This document shows, one piece after another, positions 5,108-64,000 of a stretch of DNA of 64,000 bases. Under the pieces are notes generated by a model that saw nothing but the letters and a program-made list of their open reading frames with translations, made no database searches and was not told the DNA's origin. Made by a program: the position numbers and the translations under genes. Each line of letters begins with the position of its first letter. Position 1 is the first letter of the stretch. Where the stretch lies: positions 62,001 to 126,000 of IMG/VR virus record IMGVR_UViG_3300043399_000272. One strand, 5' to 3'.

Positions 5108-5110
5108 TAA

Positions 5111-6010
5111 ATGAAATATAGTATTTTTCATCTACAAGGTGGAATTGGGAAACACATCGCAGCAACGGCTGTTGCCAAAGTTATTAAAAACAATCACCCT
5201 GATCGAAAACTCATAGTTGTATGTGCATATCCTGATATTTTTAACAACTTAGATTTTGTAGATAGAGTGTACCAGTTAGGTAATACCAGTTATTTTTACC
5301 AAAACTACGTACAAGACAAAGATTCTTTACTATTTCATCACGAGCCATATTACACTACAGACCATATTCACAAGAAACTACCGTTGATCCAAAACTGGTG
5401 TAAGATGTACGGTCTTACTTATAACGGTGAGAAACCTGTAATCAAGTTTAACAAACTTCAATATGATCTTTCTAAAAGATATTGGGTCAAAGGTAGTAAA
5501 CCTATCATGGTTATTCACACTAATGGTGGCATGATGACTACTGATGCGAAACCTTATGCATGGACTCGTGACATGCCGGAATCAATTGCACAAGAATTAG
5601 TTAATCACTACAAAGCAGATTACATGATCTATCAAGTTACAAAAATTAACTCACCTAAATTAAAAGGTGCTAATCATGTTTTTGCTACACAACAACAAGC
5701 ATTATCGTTGATGGAATTCTTCAGTTTAATGCTACACAGTGAAAAAAGAATTCTAATAGATTCTTCGCTTCAACACGCTGCTGCTGCATTAAATAAACCT
5801 TCAACTGTATTATGGAATGGCACAAGTCCAACTGTTTTTGGTTATGACTTACATGACAACATAACTACAAAGATTCCATACAACTTTAAACTTCCAGGAA
5901 GTTACTTGTTTGACTTTGATTTTAATGGTAATGAAATTGAATATCCATTTACTGAAGATCAAAATCTTTTTGATATAAACGAAATCATTGCGTCGGTAGA
6001 CAAACAATAA
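5111..6010 (+). CDS. glycosyltransferase, GT-B fold (GT9/heptosyltransferase-like)
   Basis: GGIGKHI, LIVV..YPDIF, ILIDSSLQHAAAAL.KPSTVLW, typical of GT9-like proteins. Confidence 0.75.
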   Translation: MKYSIFHLQGGIGKHIAATAVAKVIKNNHPDRKLIVVCAYPDIFNNLDFVDRVYQLGNTSYFYQNYVQDKDSLLFHHEPYYTTDHIHKKLPLIQNWCKMYGLTYNGEKPVIKFNKLQYDLSKRYWVKGSKPIMVIHTNGGMMTTDAKPYAWTRDMPESIAQELVNHYKADYMIYQVTKINSPKLKGANHVFATQQQALSLMEFFSLMLHSEKRILIDSSLQHAAAALNKPSTVLWNGTSPTVFGYDLHDNITTKIPYNFKLPGSYLFDFDFNGNEIEYPFTEDQNLFDINEIIASVDKQ

Positions 6011-34596: not shown

Positions 34597-37380
34597 TTAA
34601 TTTGTACGCAGTGCAACAAGCATTTCTTCTTGCAGCAACCTAGACTTATACAACTCATTTAGCATCAATCGGCTGTTATCGTCGGTCATAGAGATTAAGT
34701 CAGCTAGTAATTTACCAGCATTTGGTTGCGAACTTAACGGGTTTATAGATGAAATGGGCTGTTTAGAAACTTCATTTCTATAGTTAGTTAAGCTGTTTGC
34801 TGCATCTGATAACAATGCTTGATATGACGCAGCACTTGTAGCTACTTCGTTTTTATGAAGCATTACAGGGTATCCTGAATTAGGACCACTGAATACTCCA
34901 CCGTATCTTGCTTCTTCAAAATGCACAGGGTCTCTAGGTACTGTTTGCTTCAAGCCCTGTGCGTTAAACGCCGTTACTAATTTTGGATCAGTATAGTTTT
35001 GGACATCGATTGCTTTGCCCATTTCATGCTTACTGGAACCAGGAGGAGCTACAGGCATTCCTGTTTTGCCTCTAGCTAAGTAGTCAGCATAAAGTTGTCT
35101 TTGTTTTTCACTATCCCTAAAAGAACTGTTAACTTGTACTTTCTTACCAGTTAATGCGAAATAATCAGTAGCAGCAGAAACAACTTTCTCCTTAAAAGCA
35201 GGATTTAAGTTATCAAAATTAGTTCTTGATCCTGAAGCTCCACCAAAGGATAAAATCTTATCTACTTGTCCAGGTGCTGCGGGCGCAGCTGGGGCTTCAA
35301 CTGAAGGGACTGAAGGTCTTTTACCTCCTACTGCTTTACTGAATTCATCTACTGCCTTTTTAAATGTGTCAGTTGCCCCTTTGTGAATATTAGTCGAAAT
35401 GTTAAATGCTTTAACAACACCATCCATTAACATTGCGGCACCTTGCTGCTTTCGACCAGCATCGATCATATTTTCAGTGTCTTTGTCTCCGCGTTGTGCC
35501 ATTTCAGCTAGTCTACGAGCGACTGCTTGTTGTAGGTCTAAACCTTCAACTAAATTTGAATTTAATTTTTGTTGGGTGTCTAACAATCCTGCAAACTTAC
35601 CTGGTATAATACCCTGAACAGCTTCTGAACCACCAAATCTAACAGTAGGTGCTACTCTTAATAACGCCTCCCTCAAATCAACTGCTATGCTTCCTAATAA
35701 TTGATTAGCTTTTTGACCACTTTCTAATCCTTGTATAAGTCTAGGCATTGACTGCAATACTGCTGCGGCTTCTGCTGATGCTGGACCTCCAGCACCGTAT
35801 TGTGCAATACCTTTAGCTAATTGAGACTGACCCATAGCTTGCATACTAACCGCAGCTTCATAGTATTGTCTTAATCTTTCTAATTCAGCTTGCGGTGCTC
35901 CTCTAGCTTCTGCTTCTAAAATAGATGCTCTTAGCTCGTCTACAGCCATTATAGCTTCACGTGCTTCTTCTTGTTCTTTTCTAGTAGCACCAGTTAATTC
36001 TTGAAGTAGAACCAACTCTTTGATATATGCTTCTGACCCTTTAATTAACTGACTTTCAGTTTTGAGCCTTGACATCCCAAGTCTAGTTTCTTGGGCCATG
36101 TATTTTAAGGTAAGTTCTCGTTGCTCGTTTGCAACAATACCCAATGCTTCTAATTCTTTTCCGGCGCCGCTTTTGAATAGTTCTCCAGCAACTCGAATAT
36201 ACTGTCTAGCTCCTTCGCTAGTTGTAGCCCCAAAATACTTTAAATCTTTTGCACTTTGGGCTAGAATTCTATTGAATTCTTCAATCTCAGCTACAGTCAT
36301 CCCCAATGTCTGCATCTGTTCAAAAACATCAGACATGCCACCGGATAACAAAATACCCGAACGGGATAGATCGTTGAATGACTTAAATAATTTGTCTGAC
36401 TGTATAGCAGCTACTTCGTTTGCTTCACCTGCTTTCTTTATAGCAGTACCACCGATTGCAAGTGCGGCCCCAAATCCCCTTAGTACCCAACGTAATGCGC
36501 CCATTCCAGGTATTAACATCATTGCAATACCTATTGCTTGGGTTGCTGTTCCCAATTCATCAGTAAACTCTTTGACTGCTCTAGCAGAAACAGCGGCACC
36601 CCTAGCACCGTTGTATACTTCTTTAGTCATCTTAGCAGTTGCATTGTATAATCCTGTACCAACAGCAGTTAGTAGAATCCAACCTGCGCTAAGTGTTGCG
36701 CTCTTTCCAATTAAATCAAAGACTTTATTGTTTAAATCTGCTAGGAATGAACCACCTGTTTTATATTTGTCAGTAAGTTCTTTGAGTACGTTCCCGCTTT
36801 CTTCTTTCATTCGGTCACGTAAATCTTCTTTTTTATCTTCAACTGCTTTGCGCTTGTTTTCTTTCTCGATAAGTTTTAAATTTTCTTTTTGCTCTTTTGA
36901 TAAGATATTAACAATGTTTCCATAAGTGTCAATTTTCTTACCTAAGGATTGAAGTCTTATTTCATATTCACTCTGCTTAAAAGTACCACCAGCTTCGCCG
37001 GTTCCGGCTACTTTTACTTTTGTTAACTTGCTTAATGTTTTACCTAACTCGTTGAATTGAGTTATCAATCCCTGAGTTGCTTTTGACAGACTCTTAAAGT
37101 CTTTACCTAATGACTTGCTAGAATCAGATACGGCTCCAAACCCTCGGGTTGCATTATCGCTAGTTTTCTTAGCAGCAGAAGTAGTGGTATTGAGTTCAGT
37201 TGTTTTCTTTAACAACTTATCCAATTCTTTGTTCAACTTAGCTACAGTTGACTTTGTAGTATCAGTAGTAGTATTGAATTTACCAAACCCAGAATCCAAT
37301 CCAGTGGTAGAGTCTGTTAATTCTCGGATACTCTCCGACAATCTTCTAATTTCTTCTGGGTCTATATTATTGTCAGCCAT
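34597..37380 (-). CDS. tape-measure-like protein with a C-terminal M15 (D,D-peptidase-like) domain
   Basis: Long amphipathic helical body with a hydrophobic segment; VNSSFRD..KQRQLY, APPGSSKHEMGKAIDV, DPVHF zinc-peptidase motifs. Confidence 0.75.
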   Translation of the reverse strand: MADNNIDPEEIRRLSESIRELTDSTTGLDSGFGKFNTTTDTTKSTVAKLNKELDKLLKKTTELNTTTSAAKKTSDNATRGFGAVSDSSKSLGKDFKSLSKATQGLITQFNELGKTLSKLTKVKVAGTGEAGGTFKQSEYEIRLQSLGKKIDTYGNIVNILSKEQKENLKLIEKENKRKAVEDKKEDLRDRMKEESGNVLKELTDKYKTGGSFLADLNNKVFDLIGKSATLSAGWILLTAVGTGLYNATAKMTKEVYNGARGAAVSARAVKEFTDELGTATQAIGIAMMLIPGMGALRWVLRGFGAALAIGGTAIKKAGEANEVAAIQSDKLFKSFNDLSRSGILLSGGMSDVFEQMQTLGMTVAEIEEFNRILAQSAKDLKYFGATTSEGARQYIRVAGELFKSGAGKELEALGIVANEQRELTLKYMAQETRLGMSRLKTESQLIKGSEAYIKELVLLQELTGATRKEQEEAREAIMAVDELRASILEAEARGAPQAELERLRQYYEAAVSMQAMGQSQLAKGIAQYGAGGPASAEAAAVLQSMPRLIQGLESGQKANQLLGSIAVDLREALLRVAPTVRFGGSEAVQGIIPGKFAGLLDTQQKLNSNLVEGLDLQQAVARRLAEMAQRGDKDTENMIDAGRKQQGAAMLMDGVVKAFNISTNIHKGATDTFKKAVDEFSKAVGGKRPSVPSVEAPAAPAAPGQVDKILSFGGASGSRTNFDNLNPAFKEKVVSAATDYFALTGKKVQVNSSFRDSEKQRQLYADYLARGKTGMPVAPPGSSKHEMGKAIDVQNYTDPKLVTAFNAQGLKQTVPRDPVHFEEARYGGVFSGPNSGYPVMLHKNEVATSAASYQALLSDAANSLTNYRNEVSKQPISSINPLSSQPNAGKLLADLISMTDDNSRLMLNELYKSRLLQEEMLVALRTN

Positions 37381-37390
37381 TTTTTAGTGA

Positions 37391-37414
37391 TTAAATAATT
37401 CTAATGTATTTATG
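37391..37414. promoter_or_regulatory. pair of opposed late promoter-like motifs
   Basis: TTAAATA at 37391-37397 (+) and CATAAATA at 37407-37414 (-), between divergent genes. Confidence 0.55.
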
Positions 37415-38464
37415 ACCGAAAAAACTGTGTCTACACCAGCCTTCAGAAAACCTGCATTATACTTTAAACTTCCCAGCAACGGTAAATTTTACCCAGAAAA
37501 TAGTTTAAAGTTGCCACCTAACAACGAGTTACCGGTGTATCCCACTACGGGTTTAGATGAAATCACTATAAAAACAGTAGACGCATTGTTTAACGGTTCG
37601 GCAATAGTTGAAGTTATCAGAAGCTGTGTACCCGATATTCCTGATCCTTGGGAAATACCCGTAGTAGATTTAGACCCACTATTGGTTGCAATCAAGTTAG
37701 CATCATTCGGAAACGGCATGGACATTGATTCAACTTGTCCTGAATGCAACGAATCTAGTAAGTACGGGTTAAATTTAACTAACATATTGAATAACTTAAA
37801 ATTAGGTGATTACGACTCTGAATTAGAAGTTGACGGTATCTACGTTAAGTTTCGTCCATTAAAGTACAAAGATTACAACAGATTCAATATCCAAGAGTTT
37901 GAGTTTCAAAAGATTATCAATTCAATTGATATGATAAAAGATGAAAAACTAAAAGAAAAGAAGAATATAGATGCCATCATGGCTTCGCTTGAGATGCACA
38001 TAGAACGCATAACTGCAAGTATAGAATACATTAAAACTTCGGATAACTTAGTTAACAACGCAGACTTTATAAGAGAGTTCCTAGAAAACTGTAATGTTGA
38101 TTATTACCGAAAAATCAGAGAGCGTTATACAACTCTTAAAGAGTCTACACAAACCAAACCACTGGTTATAAAATGCACTCACTGTTCACATGAGTATGAG
38201 CAACTACTAATGCTAAACTATTGCGAATATTTTCGGGTTAGACTATTGTATATGCAACCGGAAGAAATTCAAGAATGGTTAACTAGTATGGAAAAGGATG
38301 CATTAGAAATTAAGAATAGTGCATTGAAAATGTCCTGGTATATGCGTGGAGGTATATCATTCAATGAAATACTGCATTTGTCAGACAGAGAACGAGAAAC
38401 GATTAACGAAATCATTAAAGAAAACTTAGAGACAACTAAAAAGACGCAGTTACCATTCTTCTAA
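37412..38464 (+). CDS. gp26: baseplate hub assembly protein (gp26-like), long form with a C-terminal ~75-aa extension
   Basis: RKPAL..KLPS, DEI..KT...L.NG, SC.PDI.DPW, two CxxC pairs; extension ...SWYMRGG...KENLETTKKTQLPFF. Confidence 0.75.
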   Translation: MTEKTVSTPAFRKPALYFKLPSNGKFYPENSLKLPPNNELPVYPTTGLDEITIKTVDALFNGSAIVEVIRSCVPDIPDPWEIPVVDLDPLLVAIKLASFGNGMDIDSTCPECNESSKYGLNLTNILNNLKLGDYDSELEVDGIYVKFRPLKYKDYNRFNIQEFEFQKIINSIDMIKDEKLKEKKNIDAIMASLEMHIERITASIEYIKTSDNLVNNADFIREFLENCNVDYYRKIRERYTTLKESTQTKPLVIKCTHCSHEYEQLLMLNYCEYFRVRLLYMQPEEIQEWLTSMEKDALEIKNSALKMSWYMRGGISFNEILHLSDRERETINEIIKENLETTKKTQLPFF

Positions 38465-38488
38465 AAAGTACAACTCGTTTTTTTGGTC

Positions 38489-38496
38489 TATAAATA
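38489..38496 (+). promoter_or_regulatory. perfect T4 late promoter TATAAATA
   Basis: Exact consensus, followed by a GGAG SD (38507-38510) and ATG 38516. Confidence 0.8.
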
Positions 38497-38515
38497 CACG
38501 AATATTGGAGATATC

Positions 38516-39334
38516 ATGTCAAACAACCCATTGAAAAATTATTTTCGCAAGCCTGCATTAACAATAAAACTACCTAGCGGTGGTCAAGGTTACAAAGAAG
38601 GTGCATTACAATTGCCTGAATCAGGTGAGTTGTCTATATACCCAATGACGGCAATGGATGAGATCAATGTAAAGACTCCTGAAAATCTAACGAACGGAAA
38701 TGCAGTTGTTGGTTTAGTTCGTAGTTGTATCCCTGATATCAAAGACCCTTGGGAAATTTTAAGTACTGATTTAGATACCCTATTATTGGGTATTAGAATT
38801 GCTACTACTGGTAAGATGCTAAAAGTCGAAACCGAATGCCCAAACTGTAGCGCAGAAAACAAACATGATATTAACGTATATGATATGCTTGCAGCTATTG
38901 GTAATAGCGGCTACGACCAATTGTTATCTTTGAATGGATTGTCAATCAAGTTCAAACCACTGAACTATAGACAAATCATGAAGGCAAATGAATCCCAAAC
39001 ACAGATTCAACGAAAGATTGATTCAATTGATGAACAAACATCAGAAGAAGCAAAACTTAAAATTTCAGCAGAAGTTATTAAAGAACTGAACAACATGTCA
39101 TTTGTATTAGTCGGGGAAGCAGTTGAATATATAAAGACCCCTGACAATGTAGTGTTTGAAAAGGAATTTATTCGTGAATTCCTAGAAAATTGCGACAAAG
39201 ATACATTCGATAAAATCAAGCAAACAAATTTGGATTTACGTGCTGCCACCGATATTAAACCAGTGAATCTCACTTGCACATCATGTAATCATGAATATGA
39301 GTTCTCTTTGGATATCAATGTGAACTCAATCTAA
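38516..39334 (+). CDS. gp26: baseplate hub assembly protein (gp26-like), short paralogue
   Basis: 48 of the first 87 aligned residues are identical to 37412..38464 (by-eye alignment); two CxxC pairs; no extension. Confidence 0.75.
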   Translation: MSNNPLKNYFRKPALTIKLPSGGQGYKEGALQLPESGELSIYPMTAMDEINVKTPENLTNGNAVVGLVRSCIPDIKDPWEILSTDLDTLLLGIRIATTGKMLKVETECPNCSAENKHDINVYDMLAAIGNSGYDQLLSLNGLSIKFKPLNYRQIMKANESQTQIQRKIDSIDEQTSEEAKLKISAEVIKELNNMSFVLVGEAVEYIKTPDNVVFEKEFIREFLENCDKDTFDKIKQTNLDLRAATDIKPVNLTCTSCNHEYEFSLDINVNSI

Positions 39335-39387
39335 GTCCATAGTTACTCATTTATCCTAAACTACACTATCTTACTTTTATCTTTAGT

Positions 39388-39437
39388 AGATGACCTTCGG
39401 TCATCTTACCTTCACAATGTTCACTTCGTTCACATTG
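39388..39437. terminator. two hairpins at the convergence of + and - transcription units
   Basis: AGATGACC-TTC-GGTCATCT (39388-39406); CAATGT...ACATTG (39415-39437). Confidence 0.5.
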
Positions 39438-39499
39438 CTTGGTATACTGATTTATTCTAATTAATTCTTTTTGATTCTAATACTAATCTTTATTAGGGG

Positions 39500-39870
39500 G
39501 ATATATACTGCCGCTTTGAAGCCATGGTAGTGCTATTTTAGCACTACCAATGGATAAACTATGCCATGCCCGTCATCCTTTGCCGTCTGTTCCCCAGCTA
39601 GACGCCCTGTACTGACTCTAGCTGCGATCGGTTGCCCTGTAAATTGTTATGGGACTGTAGTGAGCCTATTGTACTTAGAAACATTCATACAACGACTCGG
39701 CAACGCATGTTACATATCCGCAAGACAGAATTAGATATGTACTCATTGAGGGTTCCCTAATAGATTGCCCTCTCGATCTCCCAAGCAGTATCACTACTAC
39801 TTGCATACTCCAGATCCATCAGCTATCTTTCAAGCATCTTCAAGGAGGTCCTACAAACTAGGACGACTAA
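39500..39870 (-). ncRNA. candidate large structured non-coding RNA (family not recognised; ends approximate)
   Basis: No ORF of 60 aa or more; about 46% GC (137/300 over 39541-39840) in an AT-rich context; at least five stems; GUGA tetraloop and G-U pairs read correctly on the - strand. Confidence 0.55.
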
Positions 39871-39886
39871 TTTTTATGTTAATAAA

Positions 39887-40438
39887 TTAAGTTTGTGATT
39901 TTAAATTTGACGTGGTGTCTGTTGTTGAACCTGAATATAATTTTACTAAGTCTTTGTTATGTTTGAAAAAGCTGTCAAACTCTGTGATCAACCAATCACC
40001 GTATGTTTTACTAGAATAAAAAGTATAACTGTCTATTCTCCAAGTTAGTTTTGGTTGAACTGCAACGAATTGTCCGATACGATTAAACTTCATAAAAAGA
40101 ATGTTTAAATCACCTTCGTCCTCAACGTCTAAAAGTTGATCCAGCCACGAATCAAGTTGTTTGCAGCTTCCGGTAAGCAGTAAGTGAAACGGGAAGTCTT
40201 TATAGAATTTGCATTCTGCATTCATTTTACTGAAGGAGTGCCCCGGAACAATGTCGCCCTTAAAAGAACGAATTTGTCCCTCATGAAGCACTTCTTTACG
40301 GACTTGATTCTTGCCACCTACATATGCGCCGGATCCAGGTGCACGAATGAATGATTCATTGTACAACTCTGATAAAAATTTAGCGACTGTGCGCTCGTAT
40401 CCTGATCCTTTTGCTTTTTGCGGTGATGGCATATTCAT
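39887..40438 (-). CDS. PD-(D/E)xK nuclease, Holliday-junction-resolvase-like
   Basis: KAKGSGYER.VA..L, RAPGSGA, GDIVP, ECKFY; start may be 40432. Confidence 0.75.
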   Translation of the reverse strand: MNMPSPQKAKGSGYERTVAKFLSELYNESFIRAPGSGAYVGGKNQVRKEVLHEGQIRSFKGDIVPGHSFSKMNAECKFYKDFPFHLLLTGSCKQLDSWLDQLLDVEDEGDLNILFMKFNRIGQFVAVQPKLTWRIDSYTFYSSKTYGDWLITEFDSFFKHNKDLVKLYSGSTTDTTSNLKSQT

Positions 40439-40459
40439 ACTTATGTCCGTGTAAACAAA

Positions 40460-40936
40460 TTACAAATTTTTTAGTCTAAAAATGGTATTTTCATACAAAT
40501 CGTGCAATATTCCAATACCGCCGACTCTATTCCACTCATCAATATTCTGTATTCTATCATCAATGAGTATGTCTCCTTGTTTACAATGAAACTGTTTATC
40601 TTTACTAAAAGGACCGAAATGTACAGGAACATCAGGGAAATACGTTTGTCCCCACATGACCTTGTCATAAAATGCCCAATGAAGTTTGTTTGATTTTGGA
40701 ACTGCTGTTAAAAAGTAAAGTTCCATGTTTCTATCTTTAGCAAATGTTCTGCAAAAATTTACCAAATCATCCGCATACGGTGTTTTCTTTAAATCTCTGT
40801 ATAGTCTAGGGTTTCGTGCAATTTGATTCCATAAATTATCGGGATACTCAACTTCCGAACCAAACCCATGCACACGAAATGCATATTCATTGAAGTCTGC
40901 TACGACTCCATCCATATCTAGGTATATCGTATTCAT
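40460..40936 (-). CDS. HAD-family 5'(3')-deoxyribonucleotidase-like protein
   Basis: IYLDMDGVVADF, FLTA.P, K..W, ILIDDR..NIDEW...GG.GILH. Confidence 0.85.
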   Translation of the reverse strand: MNTIYLDMDGVVADFNEYAFRVHGFGSEVEYPDNLWNQIARNPRLYRDLKKTPYADDLVNFCRTFAKDRNMELYFLTAVPKSNKLHWAFYDKVMWGQTYFPDVPVHFGPFSKDKQFHCKQGDILIDDRIQNIDEWNRVGGIGILHDLYENTIFRLKNL

Positions 40937-43005
40937 TCTACTTCTACTGATGTATTATATGACGTAAATCCGCCTTCTTTAATAACTTTCAAAACGTTAG
41001 GTACACGTCCTGCAAGTTCCTCGCGGTGAGACACAAGCCAAATAGATTTGTGTCGCCGGCGACTCATATCTTTTAGAATCGCTAGACTATTCTCTACACC
41101 CATAGTGTCAAGACCACTATCGATTAATTCGTCAATGAATAATGTATTGACTGGAGCATACAAGTTCTCCCATACATCACGGAAAGCAAAACTCAAACCA
41201 AGAATCAGTCTGTTGCGTTCACCACGACTTAAGTTATCAAAGTCAAGTTCACGACCCAACTCAGTTATTTCAACTGAGAGATCGTTTTTAAAGATAACAC
41301 TGTGGGGAAGTCCGATTTTATCTAAGTAGTGAGTTAGTCGTGCGTTTAGATAACTCAAGTTTTGATCGATGATCTTTTTACGAACAAAACTGTCCTTGCT
41401 AGTCAATAAGTCAAGCAAGAACTTTTGGTGTTCCATTGCTTTTGTAATTTCGTTTATCTTGTCAAACTTTACCTCTTGAAGTGCTTGGGCCTCCATGTCT
41501 TGAATTTGGTCTTGATACGGATCCATTTCCGCCGCCTTTGCCTCAATCTGTGATAATAGAGATGATACCTTTGTTCTATGTTCAACGGCTTGTGACTCTG
41601 TATCATAATGAGTAGATGGACATGGGCCAAGAGTGACGCTAGGCGTATCAAAAAGTTGTTCACTAAAGGGGTTATTCTCGCTGGATTTTTCGTCAATCTG
41701 CTTTTTGATGTTATCAATTTCCGTTGACTGACGAACTGCCTCAGCCTCTGTCTTATAATGTGTTGAAGGTTTTTCATTTACAATTATTGGGTTAGCAACT
41801 AACTCATCCAGCTGGAACTTTAAATCATCTAAATGACTTTTGCTAGCATTCCACAAATCAATCTTGTTATTCAAAACCGTAGTATGCTGGTCATCATGGA
41901 AGTCTTGCCCACACGCATAACACTTGTGTTCTTGTAATGTTTTAACTTCTTGCTCTAGCTTTTTGTGGTTTTTATCTTCTTTTACAAATTCTTTACGCAG
42001 ACTTTCAACTTTACCTTCATACGCAGCTTTTAACTGAACCTGTTGATTGTATGTAATCAAGTCTTTATGGGACTGTAGCTCTACTGCAAAATCAATATGA
42101 CTCAACACATCCATTTTGTCTTGGAGTAACTTAATGTCTTTGTCGTGCTTTTGTTGCCAAGCAATTTGCCGCGCAACTAACGCATCATGGGCTTCTTGCT
42201 GACGCTTCTTCTCATTCCAAATTACTAATTCTTTGTGCGCTAGTAATTCATTGTCAATGTCAATTTTACTTAATTCATCATACGTGGACACAAGTGAAGC
42301 GAGGTCTTCGTCATGTTTTTTTTGCCAAAGCATTTGTCTACGTTTAATAGCATCAATTTGTTCTTTGACACGCTTGTTAGCTTCTTCAACTGCTTTAATT
42401 CTAAATTCTTCTTGTTGAATATCATCTTTACTTTGCCGAATCAAATCTTTAACAACTTCTGCTTTCTCAGATAGTAACGTAATACCCAGTAGCTGTTCAA
42501 TGATTTCTCGTTGTTCATTGTTTTTCAAAGCAAGGAATGGTTCGGAATATGTATTCAACACAACAATGTGTTTAAACATTTCCGGAGTCATATTCAACAC
42601 ACGCTCAATTGCAACTTGTGTTTCTTTGTTTTCACCTTGTTGATCTTCAGTTGCCTTTTGCTGGACATCGTTAACATAAAATTTAAGGATGTTGGGTTTA
42701 CGACCACGCTCAATCTTGTAATCAGTACCATTGACTGTAAACTCAAGCGTAACCATCATACCTTTTCCATTAGTACGATTAACTAAGTTATCTTTGCGAA
42801 TTGAGTTGATGGGTTGACCAAACAATGCATATGACAAGCCCTGAATCAGCGTGGTTTTGCCGGTACCATTACGAGCACCGTCACCGCCTAAGTCTAAGTT
42901 CTCACCTAGAATTAGCGTGATATCCTTCTTGTCAAAGTCAACTGCTTGAGTTACGTTACCGATACTTAAAAAATTCCGAAGAGTGATATTTTTAATTGTT
43001 ATCAT
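40933..43005 (-). CDS. gp46: recombination endonuclease ATPase subunit (T4 gp46/Rad50-like)
   Basis: NFLSIGN, Walker A NGTGKT, zinc hook CYAC, signature LSRGE, Walker B FIDELIDSGLD, SHR. Confidence 0.95.
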   Translation of the reverse strand: MITIKNITLRNFLSIGNVTQAVDFDKKDITLILGENLDLGGDGARNGTGKTTLIQGLSYALFGQPINSIRKDNLVNRTNGKGMMVTLEFTVNGTDYKIERGRKPNILKFYVNDVQQKATEDQQGENKETQVAIERVLNMTPEMFKHIVVLNTYSEPFLALKNNEQREIIEQLLGITLLSEKAEVVKDLIRQSKDDIQQEEFRIKAVEEANKRVKEQIDAIKRRQMLWQKKHDEDLASLVSTYDELSKIDIDNELLAHKELVIWNEKKRQQEAHDALVARQIAWQQKHDKDIKLLQDKMDVLSHIDFAVELQSHKDLITYNQQVQLKAAYEGKVESLRKEFVKEDKNHKKLEQEVKTLQEHKCYACGQDFHDDQHTTVLNNKIDLWNASKSHLDDLKFQLDELVANPIIVNEKPSTHYKTEAEAVRQSTEIDNIKKQIDEKSSENNPFSEQLFDTPSVTLGPCPSTHYDTESQAVEHRTKVSSLLSQIEAKAAEMDPYQDQIQDMEAQALQEVKFDKINEITKAMEHQKFLLDLLTSKDSFVRKKIIDQNLSYLNARLTHYLDKIGLPHSVIFKNDLSVEITELGRELDFDNLSRGERNRLILGLSFAFRDVWENLYAPVNTLFIDELIDSGLDTMGVENSLAILKDMSRRRHKSIWLVSHREELAGRVPNVLKVIKEGGFTSYNTSVEVE

Positions 43006-55542: not shown

Positions 55543-55558
55543 ATTATAGGCATAACAA

Positions 55559-58500
55559 ATGGTAACAAGAGTTCGAACAATTGATTTTCTTCCAGAAGTT
55601 TTTAAGACAAAATCAAACAGTCAATTTTTAAAGGGGTCGCTAGATCAACTAGTTCAGCAGCCTGACTTTAAAAGAATTCAAGGATACATAGGCAGTAAAT
55701 TCGGTTATGGAATTAATGCACGTGACAAATATCTAGTTGAACCTACGAAAGTGCGTTCAGATTATCAACTAGAACCTGCAGTAATATTTAAAAAGACCAA
55801 TACAAATACTGCTGTAGATTTACTAACTTATCCTGGATTGACAGATACTCTAACATTGCAGGGTTCAAATGTAACAAATGATTCAGAATTGTTTAATAAT
55901 GAATTTTATTCTTGGGATAGTTTTGTAAATCTAGATACATTGGTTAACTACGCACAGTATTATTGGTTACCAAACGGACCTGATGCAGTTCAAGTTACTA
56001 ATACTAGTTTCTTTGATAGATTAAGTCTTATAGTGACGCAAGGTTCTGCGGGATATGTAATTACTAGTCCTACGACAGTAATTGAAGGTGTCAACCCTAC
56101 TCTTACTTTAATTAGAGGTGGCACATATACATTTGCAGTTAATCAAACTGATGATTTTTGGATTCAATCAGAACCCGGCACGTCTGGCAAAAACATAACA
56201 CGATCTAATTTTAGTACAAGAGAAGTTTTAGGAGTTGAAAACAATGGCATCTCTGAAGGAACAATTACTTTTACAGTTCCAATGTCAACAGCTCAAGATA
56301 CTTGGTTGTTCCCTAATTCAATTGATATCGACTTAGCAACTACTTTAAAATGGGAAGAATTACAGGGCCTTCCTATAACCAGTAATACAAAAATCGACGG
56401 GTTAGCAGTTCAATCACTAATCGGTAAAACTGTTATATTTTACGGCACAACACCTGGTACATTAGGTGCATATAATGATTTCTACGGTGATAGTTATGAT
56501 GATGACGATTACTCAGAAACAACTTACACCGATATTACAAAACATTATTATACTATCACTGCTGCAGGTAACGTTGATTCACCTGTACTGAACCTAACAG
56601 AAACAGGTTTAATACCAGACAACACTTCTTTAAATATATTGTATGGCACAGAATACAGTGGTAGACAGTTTGTAAAAAACTCATATGCAGAAATAGTTTT
56701 AATACCTTACTTAACTGCACCATTAGATGTATTGTGGTATCAAAGTAGTAATAATCCTAACCTAGTAGGTAGAATTGAATTAGTTGATCCTATAACATTG
56801 CCTATTATTAATATCTTAGACATTTTAGGTAAAAAAACATACGTTAGCCCTAATAATGTAACATTTACTAATGGGCTAAAAGTCACATTTGTCGGTAACA
56901 TTGTTCCCGTAGAATATGCAACAGGTAGCTATTATGTTGAGGGAGTGGGATCTGCTATTGAGTTAATACCTACTGAATTCTTCGATAATCCTCCTATTAC
57001 AGAAGCTACAACACCGGACTACATCACTATTGCACGAAATAGTTTTGATAAAAATGAATGGTCACGTAGCAATCGTTGGTTCCATATCGATGTATTGAAT
57101 GCAACAATTGCATATAATGTTACTAGTCCTATTGCTTTAGAGGCTTTGGGTAATGTAAACAATCGTGCCAAGAGACCTATAATTGAATTTTATCCAAATT
57201 TAAAACTTTACAATTCTGGAACACTAAATCGTGAAAACGTGAAGTACATTAATTTTACTGTAACTGATGCATTTACGCAAGTAGCAGGAACTACAAGTTT
57301 TTATCCTGACGGTAGCACTGCACTAGTCAGTGGAGACACTATTATTTTTGCAGGTGACAATTCTGTTGATGTAAGAAATAAAATTTATGTAGCGCAAGTA
57401 TCAACAGTATCACCATCTACTCCTCCAGTGATCACCTTGAGTGAGTCACCTAACGGACAAGTTCAATTCGATCAACAAGTAACTGTTACGTCTGGTACAA
57501 CATACAAACAAAAATCATTTTATTTTGATGGGTTGAATTGGAAGCAAAGTCAAACAAAAGAAAGAAAAAATCAACCGCCTTTGTTTGATGTTTTCGACAA
57601 AAACAATAACAGTTTTGGAGATACTGAGTATTATCCTAGTACAACATTCAATGGATGTACACTGTTTGAGTATGCAACGGGATCAGGTGCAGATGATGCC
57701 GTTTTGGGATTCCCTATTAAGTACACATCAGGCAATCAGTTTGGTGACATTGTTTTCAATGCGTCACTCAATACACAAACTTTTGAATATTTAGATAACT
57801 TTACTGATACTACTTTAAATGTTGGTTCTGGTTTTGTTTTCAAATATGAAACTAGAGATAAGTTCACACGCAACATCGGATGGCAAACAACAGTTGATGA
57901 AAGTTTTCAATATCAAGTTTTCAACAAAGTTTCTACAGAGATTTCTAACTCACGATTTATTTGTGATGTTAAAGTAAATGATCCACAATCTACTGCTTGG
58001 CCAACTATTGTAGTTTATGCAAATAATTCTAGATTAGATTCATCTAAGTATACCGTTTCTACATCTACTAATAGTACAACTATAACTCTCGTGGATGACA
58101 TTGTTCTTGGATCACCTGTTGATATTTTAATTTATAGTGATCAAGTAAGCTCTGAGGGTTATTACCAAGTACCGTTTAACCTAGATCGCAACCCATTCAA
58201 TGGTGAAATCGAACAAATTCCTTTAGGTGACATTCGTGGTCATTACAAGAGTATTTTAAACAATGCTCCTGGTGTAACTGGTATAGCGTTTGGAGCCAAC
58301 AATTATAGAGATTTAGGTAATCTAATTCCTTATGGTACAAAAATAATTCAAAATAGTGCAAGCATCGTAAGTTCTGGTATGTTCTTACGAAACATATACA
58401 ATTTCTTTGATAGCTTGGCTTATAATTCTGTTCAATATACACAGTTTAAAACATTATTAGTAGACTTAGTTGTCACCAATGATTATACAAGTATGGATAG

Positions 58501-61500
58501 TACAGAGTTTGTACTAGACGACATTTTAGAAAAAGTAGCTAGTGTCAAATCAGATACAAATCCGTTTTTCTGGAGTGACATGATTCCTAATAAGGATTCA
58601 TTCTCTACAAAAAGTTACGTATTCAAATCATCAATTGATAATAGTAGATTTACACTTTCTCGTGTATATGATTTTACATCAGCAAACTACTACGGAGTGT
58701 TAGTTTACTTAACCCGCCGCGTGAATGGCCTCATGCAGCAGACACAGTTATTGAAGGATATAGATTATACTATTTCATCTACTGAAAATATTCTTACAGT
58801 CACAAAAGATTTACAATCCGGTGATTTAATTACGATTAAAGAATATGATCAAACGTATGGAAGCTATGTTCCAAATACCCCAACTAAATTAGGTTTATAT
58901 CCCAAGTATATTCCTGAAGTGATCTATGATGATTCTTATAGATATCCTACATACTTCATTCAAGGACACGATGGCTCCTTTAATAAATTATACGGTACTT
59001 ATGAAAATGGAGTACTAAATGATTTACGTGATCGTGTTTTGTTAGAGTTTGAGAAACGAGTATTCAACAACTTGAAAACTAGTAATGCGATTCCTTTAAC
59101 TTATGACGAAATCGTTCCTGGTCAATTTAGAAACGTTGGGTACACATTAGAGGAATACAACACAATGTATTCTAGTATGTTCTTAAATTGGGCTGGCGCT
59201 AACCGTATCGATTATCAAGAACATGACTATCAATCTACTAATCCATATACATTTAACTACAGGGGAGCTTCCTACAAATTCAACTCCAAAAAAATAGCTC
59301 AAGGTAGCTGGAGAGGAATATACTTGTGGCTATATGACACTATATATCCAGACACAAAACCATGGGAAATGTTAGGGTTCACTATTAAACCAGAATGGTG
59401 GGATACAAGATATGGTGTTGCTCCTTATACTAGTGGTAACACGTTCATGTGGCAAGACATTGAGAATGGATACGTTTGGAACAACGGTAACCCTTATATT
59501 AACACTCAAAGAACAAGACCGGGTTTATTGTCGATATTGCCAGTAGATAGTAACGGAGATTTAAAGTCACCGTTCGATTTTCTAATAGGAAGTTATGATG
59601 CTGATAACTTCGGTAATCCATGGATTTTGGGCGATGACGGTCCAGCCGAATACAGTTATTTAAAGAGTAGTACATGGCCATTTGATTTGATGCGCCTTGC
59701 TGCTTTAACTAATCCAGCTAAGTTTTTTGCTTTGGGAATCGATGTAGACAAATACAAATATGACAGTGAGTTCGGACAATATTTGTTTAATGGTCGATAC
59801 AGAGATTACTTGTCACTAACATCTATCTACGGTAACGGTGTCGCTGCACATAGTTACATGAATTGGTTCATTGATTACGTAAATCAGTATGAAGTAAATG
59901 GCACTGACTATGTTACTAATTTAATTGGAAACTTAGATGTTAGATTAACATATCGTCTAGCTGGATTTAGTGATAAAGATTTATTAGATTTCTTTGTTGA
60001 GAAGGGAAGTACATTAAGTAGCAATAATTCTCTATTGATTCCAGAAGATAATTACTCGATACTATTGTATGATAACCAGCCTACCGATACTATCATTTAT
60101 AGTTCTATAATAGTTCAAAAAACAACTAATGGCTATCGTGTATACGGCAACAGCCAAACAAAAACTTACTTCAAATCCTTTATTCCAAGCAGTAACGGGA
60201 TGACAACTGAGTTTACAGTAAACAATAATACAATTTATGTACCTAAGAATTACGTTGATAAAAGTGTTATTATTCCTTATGGTCACGAATTCAGTAATGT
60301 TACTGAGTTAGCTACTTTTATTAGAGGGTATGGTTTATACTTAGCGTCACAAGGACTTAAATTCACTGATATTGAAAACGGTATAGAATTATCATGGGAT
60401 CAAATGATCTATGAAACGTATTATTGGACATTAACAGGATGGGAAGTAGGAAGTACAATAAATGTCAACCCATCAGCTAGAAATATTATTATTGACAAAG
60501 AAAGTCACGTTGTTCAACCATTAACGATTGCAAAAGACAATTTTGTACTAAATCAAAACTTGTTACCAATCAACTTAAATGATCTTTATGTTTATCGTGA
60601 CGGTACTTACTTCAACGTTAAATCGTTGAATCAAGGTGATAGTCTATCATTTATCACTGCAAACACTAGTACCATTGAACACGTTGTCGTATTTGACAAT
60701 GAAACTATTTTCAATGACGTAATTTATAACCTTACCACCGGTCTAAGACAACAGCGTATGTATGTTAAAGGATCTAAAACCGCTGAATGGAATGGTACAG
60801 TTAATGCTGCAGGTTTTATCATTAACCAAGATAACATCCAAGAATGGCAACAAAATACAAAATACACTAAAGGTACTATTGTTAAATTCAAGAATGATTA
60901 CTATATCGCTAACGAAGTGGTAATTATCCCTAGTCCTACTTTTGATTATACTAAGTGGTTAAAAACTTCTTACGACATGATTCAAAAGGGCTTATTGCCT
61001 AATCCAAGTACACGTGCATATGAAAGCACATTGTACTATGACACAACTAACCCCAATTTAGAATCAGATGCTGATTTATTAGCATTTTCTTTGATTGGTT
61101 TTAGACCTAGACAATATTTTGCTCAAGCTAACCTAGACGATGCAACACAGGTAAACTTGTACAAGAATATGATTGAGGTTAAAGGAACTGTTAGCGGAGT
61201 AACGCAGCTTGAAGGAATTAATCTACAAGAAAATACATTAAATTATGATGTACACGAAAACTGGGCTATTAAAGTTACTGAGTTTGGCGGTATATTGAAT
61301 CAAAACTTCATAGAAATCACACTTGATGAAACTGCATTAACTGGCAACCCTAGTATTGCTTCTATAGTTGATAGAAATACAGTAGAAGGAACACAACAAG
61401 CTATACCATTATATAATATCAAAAATTATGGCAGACCAGTAACATCAGTAGATATCCTTCCTACTATCCCACAAGGACGTAATACTAGATTACCCTCAGC

Positions 61501-64000
61501 AGGTTATGTGAACCTAAACGATATTACTCAATATGGATACAATGTAAGTAATTTACCAGATGCATTAATTAACGAAGTATATAGAAATGATTACTTGTAT
61601 GTTGCCGACAAAGGCAGTACCTGGCAAGTCTATACTCCGGTATCAACTAACGCACAAGTAATCAGTGTAGTTAATAATTTGAATGGCACTGTTACTGTTG
61701 AGTTTGATAAAAACCATAACTTATACAAAAATCAAGTTATGGGTATACTAGGATTCGATAGTCGAATTGATGGATATCATACTGTTATAGATGTAATTGG
61801 TTTACAGTCATTGACTGTTTCATTGACACTTGATCCGGGCGTTACTGTTATAAACGGTGCAGGTATAAGTTTCTTGTTACAAAGTCAGAGAGTTGTTACA
61901 GCTAGAGATATTCCTAGTCTACCGCTTTTAAATTCAGAGTATTCTACAAATAAAGTATGGGTAGATAGTAACGTTGACGGTAATTGGACAGTTTATGAAA
62001 AAACTAACAATTACGCAAATGTGCCATTTGCTAAATCAGGAGGAATGATAACAGAAACATTTGGAACAAGTGTTGCGTATATTCCTGACTTTGGATATCT
62101 AGTAGGTGATAGTGCTGCTGGAAAAGTTTATGTGTTTGTACAGGCTGATAACGGAAGTTTCTTCTTAAAAGATACTATGTCATATCCTGGTACTACATTT
62201 GGCACAGTAATTGCATACAGTGAACAATTGGTTGTAATTACTGCACCGGGTCCAGCCCTAGGGATCAGTCAAATTTATATTTACAGAATACCAACTACCA
62301 ACAGTATCAATGGTTTGACACTACAACAAGTAATTACATTTGGTGGCACTATAGGTAAGAGTGTAACTATCTCACAAGATAGTAACTTATTGTATTTAGG
62401 AAGTGAAGATAACAACCTAGTTGTAATATTCCAATTAGATCGTGTTCCAACTCACACTGGTTCAGGACTTAGTTTAGCGGCGGCTACTCAGGTCAGAAGC
62501 AAACAGTTTATATGTTCCGGTAATGTAGGTAACTTAATAACTGAAGGACAGCGTGTAAGTTTCTCAACAGCTTATACTAATTTAGGAGTAACAACTTATT
62601 ACCCTATAACTGAATTCATGAATGAATTTAAAGTCTTGGGTAACCAAACAGGATTATTATCCTATGGTGATCAAGTGACGTTTAATACATCTGGAACCGG
62701 TAGCACAATTGCATACACAATTGGTTCTTTCTATGTTGATGAAGGTCTAACATTAAATATCACCGGCGCTGCAGGCAATGGCACCTTTGCTGCGGTATCT
62801 TATGCAGCACAAGCAGTTGCACCTTTCCAAATAGGAGAGAAAATTATAATCTCCGGTATGACACCGGCAGCGTACAATGGAACTCATACCGTAGTAGCTT
62901 GTACTACAACTCAAGTCACCTTTGCATCAACTGCGACTGGACCAATGACAGTTGCAGGCACGGTGTCAGCACCTACAATAACTGTATTCAGTACTATAGA
63001 AAACTTTGCTACAGGAACTAATATTAATGTAGGTAACCCAATTTACAAGATTACTTTTAGCCAAGATGATGTGCATACTGTTGTAACGAGCACCTATAAT
63101 TCGTCTACAAATAAAACTACTTTCTTGTTGCAAGATGAAATTAGTTATTCTACTCCATCTGGATCTAATATCTTTATAGTGTCAGATGCATTTAGTATTG
63201 GTGGTATACTATCATCAGTATTAGCCGCAGAAGACGACAAGTATGGTTTTAGCCTAACTACCAATTACGATGGTAGTAAATTGTTTGTTGGAGCACCGTA
63301 CACTGATTTTAGCGAAAGTCTAACAGATACAGGTGTCGTGTTCGCATATGACAGATTGATCATAAATGTAGAAGTACAGTATGATCAAAAAGAAGGTCAA
63401 CCATTCGTTATTCGTCCTCCATTCACACCTACAGACCAAACTAGAGTACTGTTAAACGGTGTATTGTTACAGAGTAATCAATATATTGTTATATTTGGTG
63501 TAATATTTATTGATGATATTGGAATGGTTGCAGGAGATATCTTAACAGTTAACAGCATTAATTTTGTGCTAACATCACAATTGTTCAGCCAAGACAATTT
63601 AAGTGATTTGCGTCAAGGTGAGTTGTTCGGGTACAGTCTTTCTTCTAACAAGTATGGTAGTGAGTTATTAGTGGGTGTACCGTTCGATGTGTCGAATAAT
63701 ACACAAAAAGAGGGTTCTGTAATACGTTTTACAAATGCAGGAAAGCGTTTTGGAAGAATACAAGGTGTAATAGAATGCAACCTATATGAACCGACTTACT
63801 TATTACTAAACGGTCAGATTGTTAATGCATTCTCTGAAACACCATTGCTAGCTACTATAAGTACAGGTGCAACAACATGTACTATTAGTGCATTAGCAGC
63901 CTCATACTTACCTAACTCAGGTGTTATCTCGTTTACGAATACGTTAACTGGTAGCATACAGTCAATTGCTTATACTAGTGTAAACGCTACAACAGGTGTA
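55559..64000 (+). CDS. giant virion structural protein, at least 2,814 aa, truncated by the window end (absent from the ORF track)
   Basis: ATG 55559 (MVTRVRTIDFLPEVFKT...); same frame is open wherever checked (60002, 62042, 63242, 63602, 63962); FG-GAP-like repeats near 62050-62420 and 63230-63720. Confidence 0.85.
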   Translation, partial: MVTRVRTIDFLPEVFKTKSNSQFLKGSLDQLVQQPDFKRIQGYIGSKFGYGINARDKYLVEPTKVRSDYQLEPAVIFKKTNTNTAVDLLTYPGLTDTLTLQGSNVTNDSELFNNEFYSWDSFVNLDTLVNYAQYYWLPNGPDAVQVTNTSFFDRLSLIVTQGSAGYVITSPTTVIEGVNPTLTLIRGGTYTFAVNQTDDFWIQSEPGTSGKNITRSNFSTREVLGVENNGISEGTITFTVPMSTAQDTWLFPNSIDIDLATTLKWEELQGLPITSNTKIDGLAVQSLIGKTVIFYGTTPGTLGAYNDFYGDSYDDDDYSETTYTDITKHYYTITAAGNVDSPVLNLTETGLIPDNTSLNILYGTEYSGRQFVKNSYAEIVLIPYLTAPLDVLWYQSSNNPNLVGRIELVDPITLPIINILDILGKKTYVSPNNVTFTNGLKVTFVGNIVPVEYATGSYYVEGVGSAIELIPTEFFDNPPITEATTPDYITIARNSFDKNEWSRSNRWFHIDVLNATIAYNVTSPIALEALGNVNNRAKRPIIEFYPNLKLYNSGTLNRENVKYINFTVTDAFTQVAGTTSFYPDGSTALVSGDTIIFAGDNSVDVRNKIYVAQVSTVSPSTPPVITLSESPNGQVQFDQQVTVTSGTTYKQKSFYFDGLNWKQSQTKERKNQPPLFDVFDKNNNSFGDTEYYPSTTFNGCTLFEYATGSGADDAVLGFPIKYTSGNQFGDIVFNASLNTQTFEYLDNFTDTTLNVGSGFVFKYETRDKFTRNIGWQTTVDESFQYQVFNKVSTEISNSRFICDVKVNDPQSTAWPTIVVYANNSRLDSSKYTVSTSTNSTTITLVDDIVLGSPVDILIYSDQVSSEGYYQVPFNLDRNPFNGEIEQIPLGDIRGHYKSILNNAPGVTGIAFGANNYRDLGNLIPYGTKIIQNSASIVSSGMFLRNIYNFFDSLAYNSVQYTQFKTLLVDLVVTNDYTSMDSTEFVLDDILEKVASVKSDTNPFFWSDMIPNKDSFSTKSYVFKSSIDNSRFTLSRVYDFTSANYYGVLVYLTRRVNGLMQQTQLLKDIDYTISSTENILTVTKDLQSGDLITIKEYDQTYGSYVPNTPTKLGLYPKYIPEVIYDDSYRYPTYFIQGHDGSFNKLYGTYENGVLNDLRDRVLLEFEKRVFNNLKTSNAIPLTYDEIVPGQFRNVGYTLEEYNTMYSSMFLNWAGANRIDYQEHDYQSTNPYTFNYRGASYKFNSKKIAQGSWRGIYLWLYDTIYPDTKPWEMLGFTIKPEWWDTRYGVAPYTSGNTFMWQDIENGYVWNNGNPYINTQRTRPGLLSILPVDSNGDLKSPFDFLIGSYDADNFGNPWILGDDGPAEYSYLKSSTWPFDLMRLAALTNPAKFFALGIDVDKYKYDSEFGQYLFNGRYRDYLSLTSIYGNGVAAHSYMNWFIDYVNQYEVNGTDYVTNLIGNLDVRLTYRLAGFSDKDLLDFFVEKGSTLSSNNSLLIPEDNYSILLYDNQPTDTIIYSSIIVQKTTNGYRVYGNSQTKTYFKSFIPSSNGMTTEFTVNNNTIYVPKNYVDKSVIIPYGHEFSNVTELATFIRGYGLYLASQGLKFTDIENGIELSWDQMIYETYYWTLTGWEVGSTINVNPSARNIIIDKESHVVQPLTIAKDNFVLNQNLLPINLNDLYVYRDGTYFNVKSLNQGDSLSFITANTSTIEHVVVFDNETIFNDVIYNLTTGLRQQRMYVKGSKTAEWNGTVNAAGFIINQDNIQEWQQNTKYTKGTIVKFKNDYYIANEVVIIPSPTFDYTKWLKTSYDMIQKGLLPNPSTRAYESTLYYDTTNPNLESDADLLAFSLIGFRPRQYFAQANLDDATQVNLYKNMIEVKGTVSGVTQLEGINLQENTLNYDVHENWAIKVTEFGGILNQNFIEITLDETALTGNPSIASIVDRNTVEGTQQAIPLYNIKNYGRPVTSVDILPTIPQGRNTRLPSAGYVNLNDITQYGYNVSNLPDALINEVYRNDYLYVADKGSTWQVYTPVSTNAQVISVVNNLNGTVTVEFDKNHNLYKNQVMGILGFDSRIDGYHTVIDVIGLQSLTVSLTLDPGVTVINGAGISFLLQSQRVVTARDIPSLPLLNSEYSTNKVWVDSNVDGNWTVYEKTNNYANVPFAKSGGMITETFGTSVAYIPDFGYLVGDSAAGKVYVFVQADNGSFFLKDTMSYPGTTFGTVIAYSEQLVVITAPGPALGISQIYIYRIPTTNSINGLTLQQVITFGGTIGKSVTISQDSNLLYLGSEDNNLVVIFQLDRVPTHTGSGLSLAAATQVRSKQFICSGNVGNLITEGQRVSFSTAYTNLGVTTYYPITEFMNEFKVLGNQTGLLSYGDQVTFNTSGTGSTIAYTIGSFYVDEGLTLNITGAAGNGTFAAVSYAAQAVAPFQIGEKIIISGMTPAAYNGTHTVVACTTTQVTFASTATGPMTVAGTVSAPTITVFSTIENFATGTNINVGNPIYKITFSQDDVHTVVTSTYNSSTNKTTFLLQDEISYSTPSGSNIFIVSDAFSIGGILSSVLAAEDDKYGFSLTTNYDGSKLFVGAPYTDFSESLTDTGVVFAYDRLIINVEVQYDQKEGQPFVIRPPFTPTDQTRVLLNGVLLQSNQYIVIFGVIFIDDIGMVAGDILTVNSINFVLTSQLFSQDNLSDLRQGELFGYSLSSNKYGSELLVGVPFDVSNNTQKEGSVIRFTNAGKRFGRIQGVIECNLYEPTYLLLNGQIVNAFSETPLLATISTGATTCTISALAASYLPNSGVISFTNTLTGSIQSIAYTSVNATTGV

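Follow-up and report, generated by a model that had tools for sequence, protein, structure and literature searches.

We report a large, intricately folded RNA of about 360 nt that matches no described RNA family, recurs among uncultivated T4-related jumbo phages, and has an unknown function. One copy lies on the minus strand at 39504-39865 of the window, the stretch of 64,000 nucleotides of a T4-related jumbo phage from IMG/VR that was analysed here, in the gap between a nuclease gene and a baseplate hub gene. Its fold of eleven helices and two pseudoknots is supported by compensatory changes in more than 80 distinct relatives. An initial annotation of the sequence had proposed an undescribed structured phage RNA on the minus strand downstream of the nuclease, and this core inference is supported by covariation, strand asymmetry, the lack of a coding signal, and absence from Rfam. 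The two pseudoknots, the P2 helix, the 3′ module, and the wider family described below had not been noticed there.

The window encodes a T4-type major head protein, prohead protease, portal, and baseplate hub and wedge proteins, as well as a gp55-like late sigma factor, SbcD/gp47, SbcC/gp46, a 5′-nucleotidase (NT5C), and a PDDEXK_15 nuclease. By protein, the closest cultured relatives are SCTP-2, PA5oct, Phosso, Atu_ph07, and RaK2-like phages, at 28-44% identity. The gap, 39335-39886 (552 nt), lies between the stop codons of two convergent genes, the hub gene (38483-39334, plus strand) and the nuclease gene (39887-40438, minus strand), and it is the largest ORF-free stretch in the window, as the initial annotation had stated; the other gaps are at most about 430 nt, and a giant ORF fills 55.5-64 kb. 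The GC content is 0.40-0.51 in 39500-39850, against 0.27-0.35 in the flanks. The elements of the locus, in the order in which they are read, are as follows.

39887..40438, minus strand: the upstream PDDEXK_15 nuclease gene, the last protein gene of the gp55-gp47-gp46-NT5C-nuclease operon.
39869..39877, minus strand: a conserved A/T-rich motif (ATAAAAATT; consensus nTAAAAATTnG in relatives), 5-7 nt before P1, a candidate late-type promoter or RNase E-type processing site by inference.
39504..39865, minus strand: the core of the structured RNA (about 362 nt).
39849..39864, minus strand: P1, the 5′ hairpin, whose sequence varies but whose pairing is kept.
39808..39847, minus strand: the P2 domain, in which CUCC (39844-39847) pairs with GGAG (39808-39811) and encloses P2a/P2b.
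39782..39803, minus strand: the P3 hairpin, capped by a GNRA tetraloop (GUGA here).
39626..39778, minus strand: the junction domain closed by P4 (39774-39778 with 39626-39630), containing P5, P6, P7, and P8.
39748..39772, minus strand: the P5/P5a hairpin, with conserved internal loops.
39707..39746, minus strand: the P6/P6a hairpin (P6a, 39711-39741), whose loop forms pseudoknot PK-A.
39631..39704, minus strand: the P7 long-range helix (39699-39704 with 39631-39636), enclosing the variable P8 hairpin (about 39663-39696) and a conserved single strand.
39596..39623, minus strand: the P9 hairpin.
39583..39594, minus strand: the 3′ strands of two pseudoknots, 39591-39594 pairing with 39651-39654 (PK-B) and 39583-39588 pairing with the P6 loop at 39723-39728 (PK-A).
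39526..39548, minus strand: the P13 hairpin, nearly invariant in sequence.
39504..39525, minus strand: the conserved 3′ tail of the core (AUGGCUUCAAAGCGGCA...), for which no partner was established.
39408..39443, minus strand: the first part of a 3′ module, a hairpin of the form stem-GA-(2 bp)-GAA-(2 bp)-GA-stem.
39388..39406, minus strand: the second part of the 3′ module, a terminator-like hairpin (AGAUGACC-GAA-GGUCAUCU) and the probable 3′ end of the transcription unit.

The gap is conserved far beyond its neighbours. The nuclease has 294 relatives in IMG/VR, and in nearly all of the 80 loci that we retrieved the gap is free of ORFs of 80 aa or more, measuring 650-830 nt from the nuclease stop to the hub stop, where the extra length in relatives is a conserved 58-aa ORF next to the hub gene. 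The gap aligns to the window at 67-77% nucleotide identity while the hub protein is only 40-49% identical, and the RNA scores 367-372 bits where the nuclease has fallen to about 60% identity. The conserved block corresponds to window positions of about 39500-39850. A 25-nt pattern from the 3′ end was found in more than 120 viral contigs, but the exact pattern was found in none of 185,579 bacterial and archaeal genomes, and blastn of the gap against GenBank phages gave no match.

To test for a conserved fold, 60 distinct relatives were aligned with MAFFT without regard to structure, and the RNAalifold consensus gave 63 pairs, 38 of them with compensatory double changes and many with no broken pairs. 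A covariance model built from 53 sequences found exactly one copy in the window, at 39504-39865 on the minus strand, with 308.5 bits (E 1.7e-89) over model positions 1-358 of 358. On 86 distinct model-aligned sequences, 98.7% of pair cells are canonical, against 28-43% when the 3′ partners are slid by 1-3 columns; 41 of 66 pairs show double changes, and 0 of 500 shuffles reach the observed values. This second alignment, which gives the strongest statistics, was fitted to the model, but the structure-blind alignment tells the same story. The minimum-free-energy z-score is -2.5 on the minus strand and -1.1 on the plus strand. In the supported helices there are 238 G.U cells and 15 A.C cells, and the transcribed strand is therefore the minus strand of the window, the same as that of the nuclease gene, which upholds the strand argument of the initial annotation. 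Because of this asymmetry, which includes P1 (42 G.U cells against 3 A.C cells), promoter-like and terminator-like sites on the plus strand were set aside as the transcription unit.

A decayed protein-coding gene, or a DNA-level site such as a pac site, an origin, or a recombination site, is the least likely reading and already close to refuted. Although there are short ORFs of 41-57 aa in the region, no ORF of 80 aa or more is kept across relatives, and the column-entropy autocorrelation in the core falls smoothly (0.48, 0.34, 0.28 at lags 1-3), without the 3-base periodicity seen in the nuclease gene (0.01, -0.06, and 0.34). A 24-aa ORF at 39390-39464 on the plus strand is unrelated to the 58-aa ORF of relatives, and its apparent conservation is that of the terminator-like hairpin. 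The compensatory changes, together with the strong excess of G.U over A.C, point instead to a single-stranded transcript of one strand.

All six structural elements listed in the initial annotation are real and covary in relatives: its stems at 39525-39549, 39596-39623, 39711-39741, 39748-39772, and 39782-39803 are P13, P9, P6a, P5, and P3, respectively, and its possible long-range GTTGCC/GGCAAC pairing (39631-39636 with 39699-39704) is P7, where pair counts are GC63/AU13/UG6 and CG69/UA13 with none broken. P1 has covarying pairs with 4-5 pair types, and in some relatives the nuclease stop codon lies inside it. In P3 all 8 pairs show double changes and 99.1% of cells are paired, and the loop, a GUGA tetraloop in the window as noted initially, is GNRA in most relatives (GCAA, GUAA, GUGA, and GCGA). 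P4 is UA48/CG24 and 99.8% paired. The two helices of P5/P5a are 100% and 99.2% paired, with one pair that is AU in 43 sequences and GC in 37. In P6/P6a, 10 of 11 pairs show double changes, and one pair takes four Watson-Crick types. The P8 pairing was read from the sequence and from covarying columns. In P9 all 7 pairs show double changes, and the helix is extended by two further covarying pairs. P13 is 99.6% paired, and its loop-closing pair is UA62/AU21. In the 3′ tail, which has invariant columns, one position covaries G:G with U:U with a distant base, 55 to 20.

P2 and the two pseudoknots were found independently by mutual information. After P9, the strand 39583-39594 forms two consecutive pseudoknot helices, with APC-corrected mutual-information z-scores of about 10. 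All six PK-A pairs covary (for example UA49/CG22 and AU44/GC25), as do three of the four PK-B pairs (UA53/AU12/CG4), and the window's own bases pair and carry compensated changes relative to the consensus. The two long-range 5′-3′ closing helices proposed by RNAalifold were rejected, since they do not covary, and one is contradicted: the P2 pair is CG in 72 sequences and UA in 3 with none broken, so that a C-to-U change in CCUCC is matched by a G-to-A change in GGAG in three distinct sequences, which preserves P2 and breaks the rival pair in the same three.

Five to seven nucleotides before P1, most of 60 relatives keep the A/T-rich motif, ATAAAAATT in the window, within an otherwise variable spacer. 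It resembles TATAAAA/ATAAATA motifs that lie 23-35 nt upstream of four genes in the window. However, the motif itself is not enriched in the window (4 found, 3.3 expected), and the exact T4 late-promoter word TATAAATA is depleted, with 1 found against 9.4 expected, so it is only a candidate late-type promoter or A/U-rich processing site. Downstream of the core, a variable A-rich linker is followed by the GA-motif hairpin, which is kept with covarying stems and inner pairs (AC/GU here, GC/GC in relatives), and then by the terminator-like hairpin, whose conservation is 0.90. In relatives the latter is followed by UUUAA or UUUUAA, where the window has CUACUAAAG, and a simple scan did not call it as a terminator on the minus strand.

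A hint of expression comes from one wastewater library labelled RNA-Seq, which holds 82% of the sampled words of 39387-39880 but only 35% of those of 39300-40500, so almost all the words it holds come from the RNA stretch. Its contigs, identical to the window over 39387-39687, cover 39387-39911; they do not cover the hub genes at all, and cover most of the rest of the operon only as short pieces from relatives. One contig ends at 39387, one base beyond the terminal hairpin, while one runs 46 nt into the nuclease gene. This evidence is suggestive only, since the contigs are low-depth and carry no strand information, and the RNA label of the library is a guess.

Walking outward with diverged nucleases, the second of which has 515 relatives, revealed other clades with 450-800-nt ORF-free gaps at the same place (clades are labelled C1, C2, C4, C5, and L291/L294 below). 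Clade C1 has an RNA of about 330 nt whose alignment has 59 pairs, 24 of them with double changes, and clade C2 has an RNA of about 450 nt. Both have the same layout of P1, P2, a P5-like hairpin, the UGCGUU...AACCG helices, and PK-A kept with unrelated sequence. Profile searches link them: the C1 profile hits C2 members over their full length at E down to 3e-9, and the C1 and C2 profiles hit the 5′ 65 nt of a member of the window's family at about E 3e-4. Clades C4, C5, and L291/L294 share the 3′ GA-hairpin and terminal hairpin (the latter less clear in C5), and C5 also shares the P1-P2 domain, but their central parts were not matched by the profiles. In other clades P2 reads CACC:GGUG, CAUC:GAUG, CCCA:UGGG, or CGUC:GACG. 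The anti-Shine-Dalgarno look of CCUCC in the window is therefore a consequence of a helix, not a conserved free sequence, and a role as an anti-Shine-Dalgarno mimic or ribosome-binding-site sponge was rejected. A search for antisense targets of the conserved single strands found only a 14-nt same-sense repeat in sbcC, probably chance.

No known family accounts for the RNA. Among the 4227 models of Rfam 15, including RNase P, group I and II introns, tmRNA, 6S, GOLLD, ROOL, HEARO, OLE, and riboswitches, none reaches its gathering score in the whole window, only chance hits at E>2 appear in 39250-39950, and homologues from two other clades gave the same result. ARAGORN finds no tRNA or tmRNA in the window, blastn of C1 and C2 homologues against GenBank phages gave no match, and our full-text literature searches found no description; within those limits it is an undescribed RNA class. 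In kind it is closest to the large ornate RNAs GOLLD and ROOL (RF01998, RF03087), which are likewise large, often phage- or prophage-encoded, multi-helix RNAs with pseudoknots, found by comparative genomics, of no known function, and probably acting through their three-dimensional structure. However, there is no match to their covariance models even at E up to 10, this RNA is smaller (about 360 nt, against probably about 580-800 nt), and it sits at a fixed place at the end of a recombination-nuclease operon in lytic-type T4-related jumbo phages. RNase P RNA and group I introns, ribozymes of 300-400 nt, are similar in size and have a multi-domain fold, long-range helices, pseudoknots, GNRA loops, and invariant junction nucleotides, but neither matches, the helix order shows no P3/P7-type knot, and the position between convergent genes means that it is not an intron. 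The phi29 pRNA and ColE1 RNA II are phage- or plasmid-encoded structured RNAs that work as machines or primers in DNA packaging or replication, and the RNA described here lies among structural and recombination genes, yet there is no sequence or structural similarity to them, and T4-type packaging would not be expected to need an RNA.

The RNA always lies on the strand of the SbcD-SbcC-nuclease genes, and it lies directly after or overlapping the nuclease stop codon in 84 of 84 family loci with enough flank. This arrangement raises the possibility of a cofactor or guide RNA of the adjacent PD-(D/E)xK nuclease, resembling the OMEGA RNAs of TnpB, IscB, and IsrB, in which a structured RNA with a pseudoknot is encoded on the same strand at, or overlapping, the end of a nuclease gene. 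The RNA also stays with the nuclease side when the other neighbour changes in clades C1 and C4. Nevertheless, we consider this reading possible but weakened, and rather unlikely. The neighbour is not a RuvC-type nuclease but a small single-domain PDDEXK_15 protein (PHROG 'RusA-like resolvase'), in which the Pfam match covers residues 7-162 of 183, leaving no extra domain; there is no transposon context, and no variable guide-like end was identified, although the variable 3′ linker was not analysed for targets. Homologues of the nuclease at about 43% identity in PA5oct, SCTP-2, and Phosso have no detectable RNA nearby, the covariance model giving only noise on the syntenic 12 kb of these phages. 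Moreover, in three loci (L293, L295, and L297) a gene of 267-320 aa separates nuclease and RNA, in one clade (loci L257-L265) an RNA-like segment lies upstream of the nuclease, and a few clades (loci L274-L277) have none within 2.5 kb. The other partners or roles suggested in the initial annotation (gp46/47, packaging, or replication priming) remain hypotheses.

A cis-acting 3′ untranslated element of the operon mRNA, stabilising the transcript end or insulating the convergent recombination and baseplate transcription units with no trans function, is also unlikely in our view. It would fit the position at the end of an operon between convergent genes, the invariant synteny within the family, the overlap of P1 with the stop codon in some relatives, the terminator-like hairpin, and the contig extending into the nuclease gene. 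However, about 80 invariant positions, many of them in junctions and single strands, two pseudoknots, a GNRA loop, and a multi-helix junction go far beyond what a 3′ stabiliser or terminator needs, conservation exceeds that of the flanking proteins, and the architecture is kept across clades while the sequence changes. Less likely still is a structured pre-primer or origin transcript, as ColE1 RNA II is, feeding recombination-dependent replication. The context of gp46/gp47 and a resolvase-like nuclease, and the iteron-like direct repeats just upstream of P1 in clades C1 and C2, would agree with it, and ColE1 would offer a precedent for a structured primer RNA; but the window's own family has no repeats upstream, and T4-type origin transcripts are not known to need elaborate folds.

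Taken as a whole, this is a gene for a large structured non-coding RNA, read from the minus strand as the terminal element of the gp55-gp47-gp46-NT5C-nuclease operon. We infer, with moderate confidence, that the RNA acts in trans through its folded three-dimensional shape, as the RNA part of a ribonucleoprotein or as a ribozyme, and not as a coding sequence, an antisense regulator, or a mere mRNA end, and that it is made either from its own A/T-rich late-type promoter just before P1 or by processing of the operon transcript at that A/U-rich site. Its constant place at the end of the recombination-nuclease operon suggests a role tied to DNA end processing or recombination-dependent replication, although no partner is identified. 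More tentatively, this could be a new class of large phage RNA that is a working part of the recombination and replication machinery of T4-related jumbo phages, either a ribozyme or the RNA subunit of a ribonucleoprotein acting with gp46/gp47 or the resolvase-like nuclease. It would be built modularly, with a conserved 5′ P1-P2 domain and a conserved 3′ GA-hairpin plus terminator-like module flanking a central domain that differs between clades (F1/C1/C2 versus C4/C5 versus the L291 type).

Large RNAs with elaborate, strongly conserved folds are rare, and those understood so far are central machines such as the ribosome, RNase P, self-splicing introns, and guide-RNA scaffolds. The RNA described here is abundant in environmental jumbo phages, with more than 120 IMG/VR contigs carrying this family and several hundred more carrying diverged relatives, from freshwater, wastewater, soil, lagoon, and estuary samples, and it is under stronger constraint than its neighbouring proteins. 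Its fixed place in the gp46/gp47-nuclease operon gives a concrete place to look for a function, and the covariation-supported model with two pseudoknots makes structural work and biochemistry directly feasible. It also shows that well-supported RNA classes remain undescribed in uncultivated phages.

Besides the RNA itself, the window contains other features, which are given here with their coordinates and strands:

34597-37380, minus strand, a 927-aa protein with a VanY-type D-Ala-D-Ala carboxypeptidase domain, between the portal and hub genes.
37412-38464, plus strand, the first, 350-aa hub-like protein.
42065-42078, minus strand, inside the SbcC/gp46 gene, a 14-nt stretch shared with the RNA.
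55555-64000, plus strand, a giant open reading frame of at least 2815 aa that runs off the end of the window.

The arrangement around the 927-aa protein is syntenic with large structural proteins of PA5oct and Phosso. In these two cultured relatives, unannotated gaps lie between the hub and resolvase genes, of 664 nt in PA5oct (4478-5142 of its locus, L207) and of 1015 nt in Phosso (4989-6004 of its locus, L206), and in Phosso the gap is next to an RNase HI gene; the covariance model does not match either of them. In relatives such as the one at locus L011, a conserved 58-aa ORF (ME.EC..IK...SWYMRGG.SY.D.LNMS..ER...NLETTKKS..PFF) is found between the hub gene and the RNA. In the window, this sequence is instead the C-terminus of the first, 350-aa hub-like protein, which ends ...NLETTKKTQLPFF, and a second hub paralogue follows it.

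Over the whole window, the T4 late-promoter word TATAAATA occurs once, where 9.4 occurrences are expected, while looser TATAAAA/ATAAATA motifs sit 23-35 nt upstream of four genes (3183, 14755, 28497, and 45084), which hints at a variant late promoter. The 14-nt stretch inside the SbcC/gp46 gene is identical and same-sense to the conserved single strand of the RNA (CTACAGTCCCATAA, located in the RNA at about 39646-39659), although this is probably due to chance.

A second, distinct phage carrying the same RNA family (loci L218/L219, from IMG samples 3300047548 and 3300043399) occurs in the same two samples as the window's own contigs. In the diverged clades C1 and C2, iteron-like direct repeats lie just upstream of the RNA, between the nuclease stop and the 5' hairpin P1, and consist of two or three copies of TAGGCATACAAAGGCACAC or CTAACACA; they were seen at L224 (3016-3075), L255, and other loci of these two clades, and are absent in the window's family. 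Further clades (loci L240-L250, L291, and L294) have long ORF-free gaps of 430-850 nt downstream of the nuclease. They share the 3' GA-hairpin and the terminal hairpin, although the terminal hairpin is less clear in clade C5, and in C5 they also share the P1-P2 domain, but the central part differs; perhaps these clades represent additional subfamilies, or they may carry a swapped central domain.
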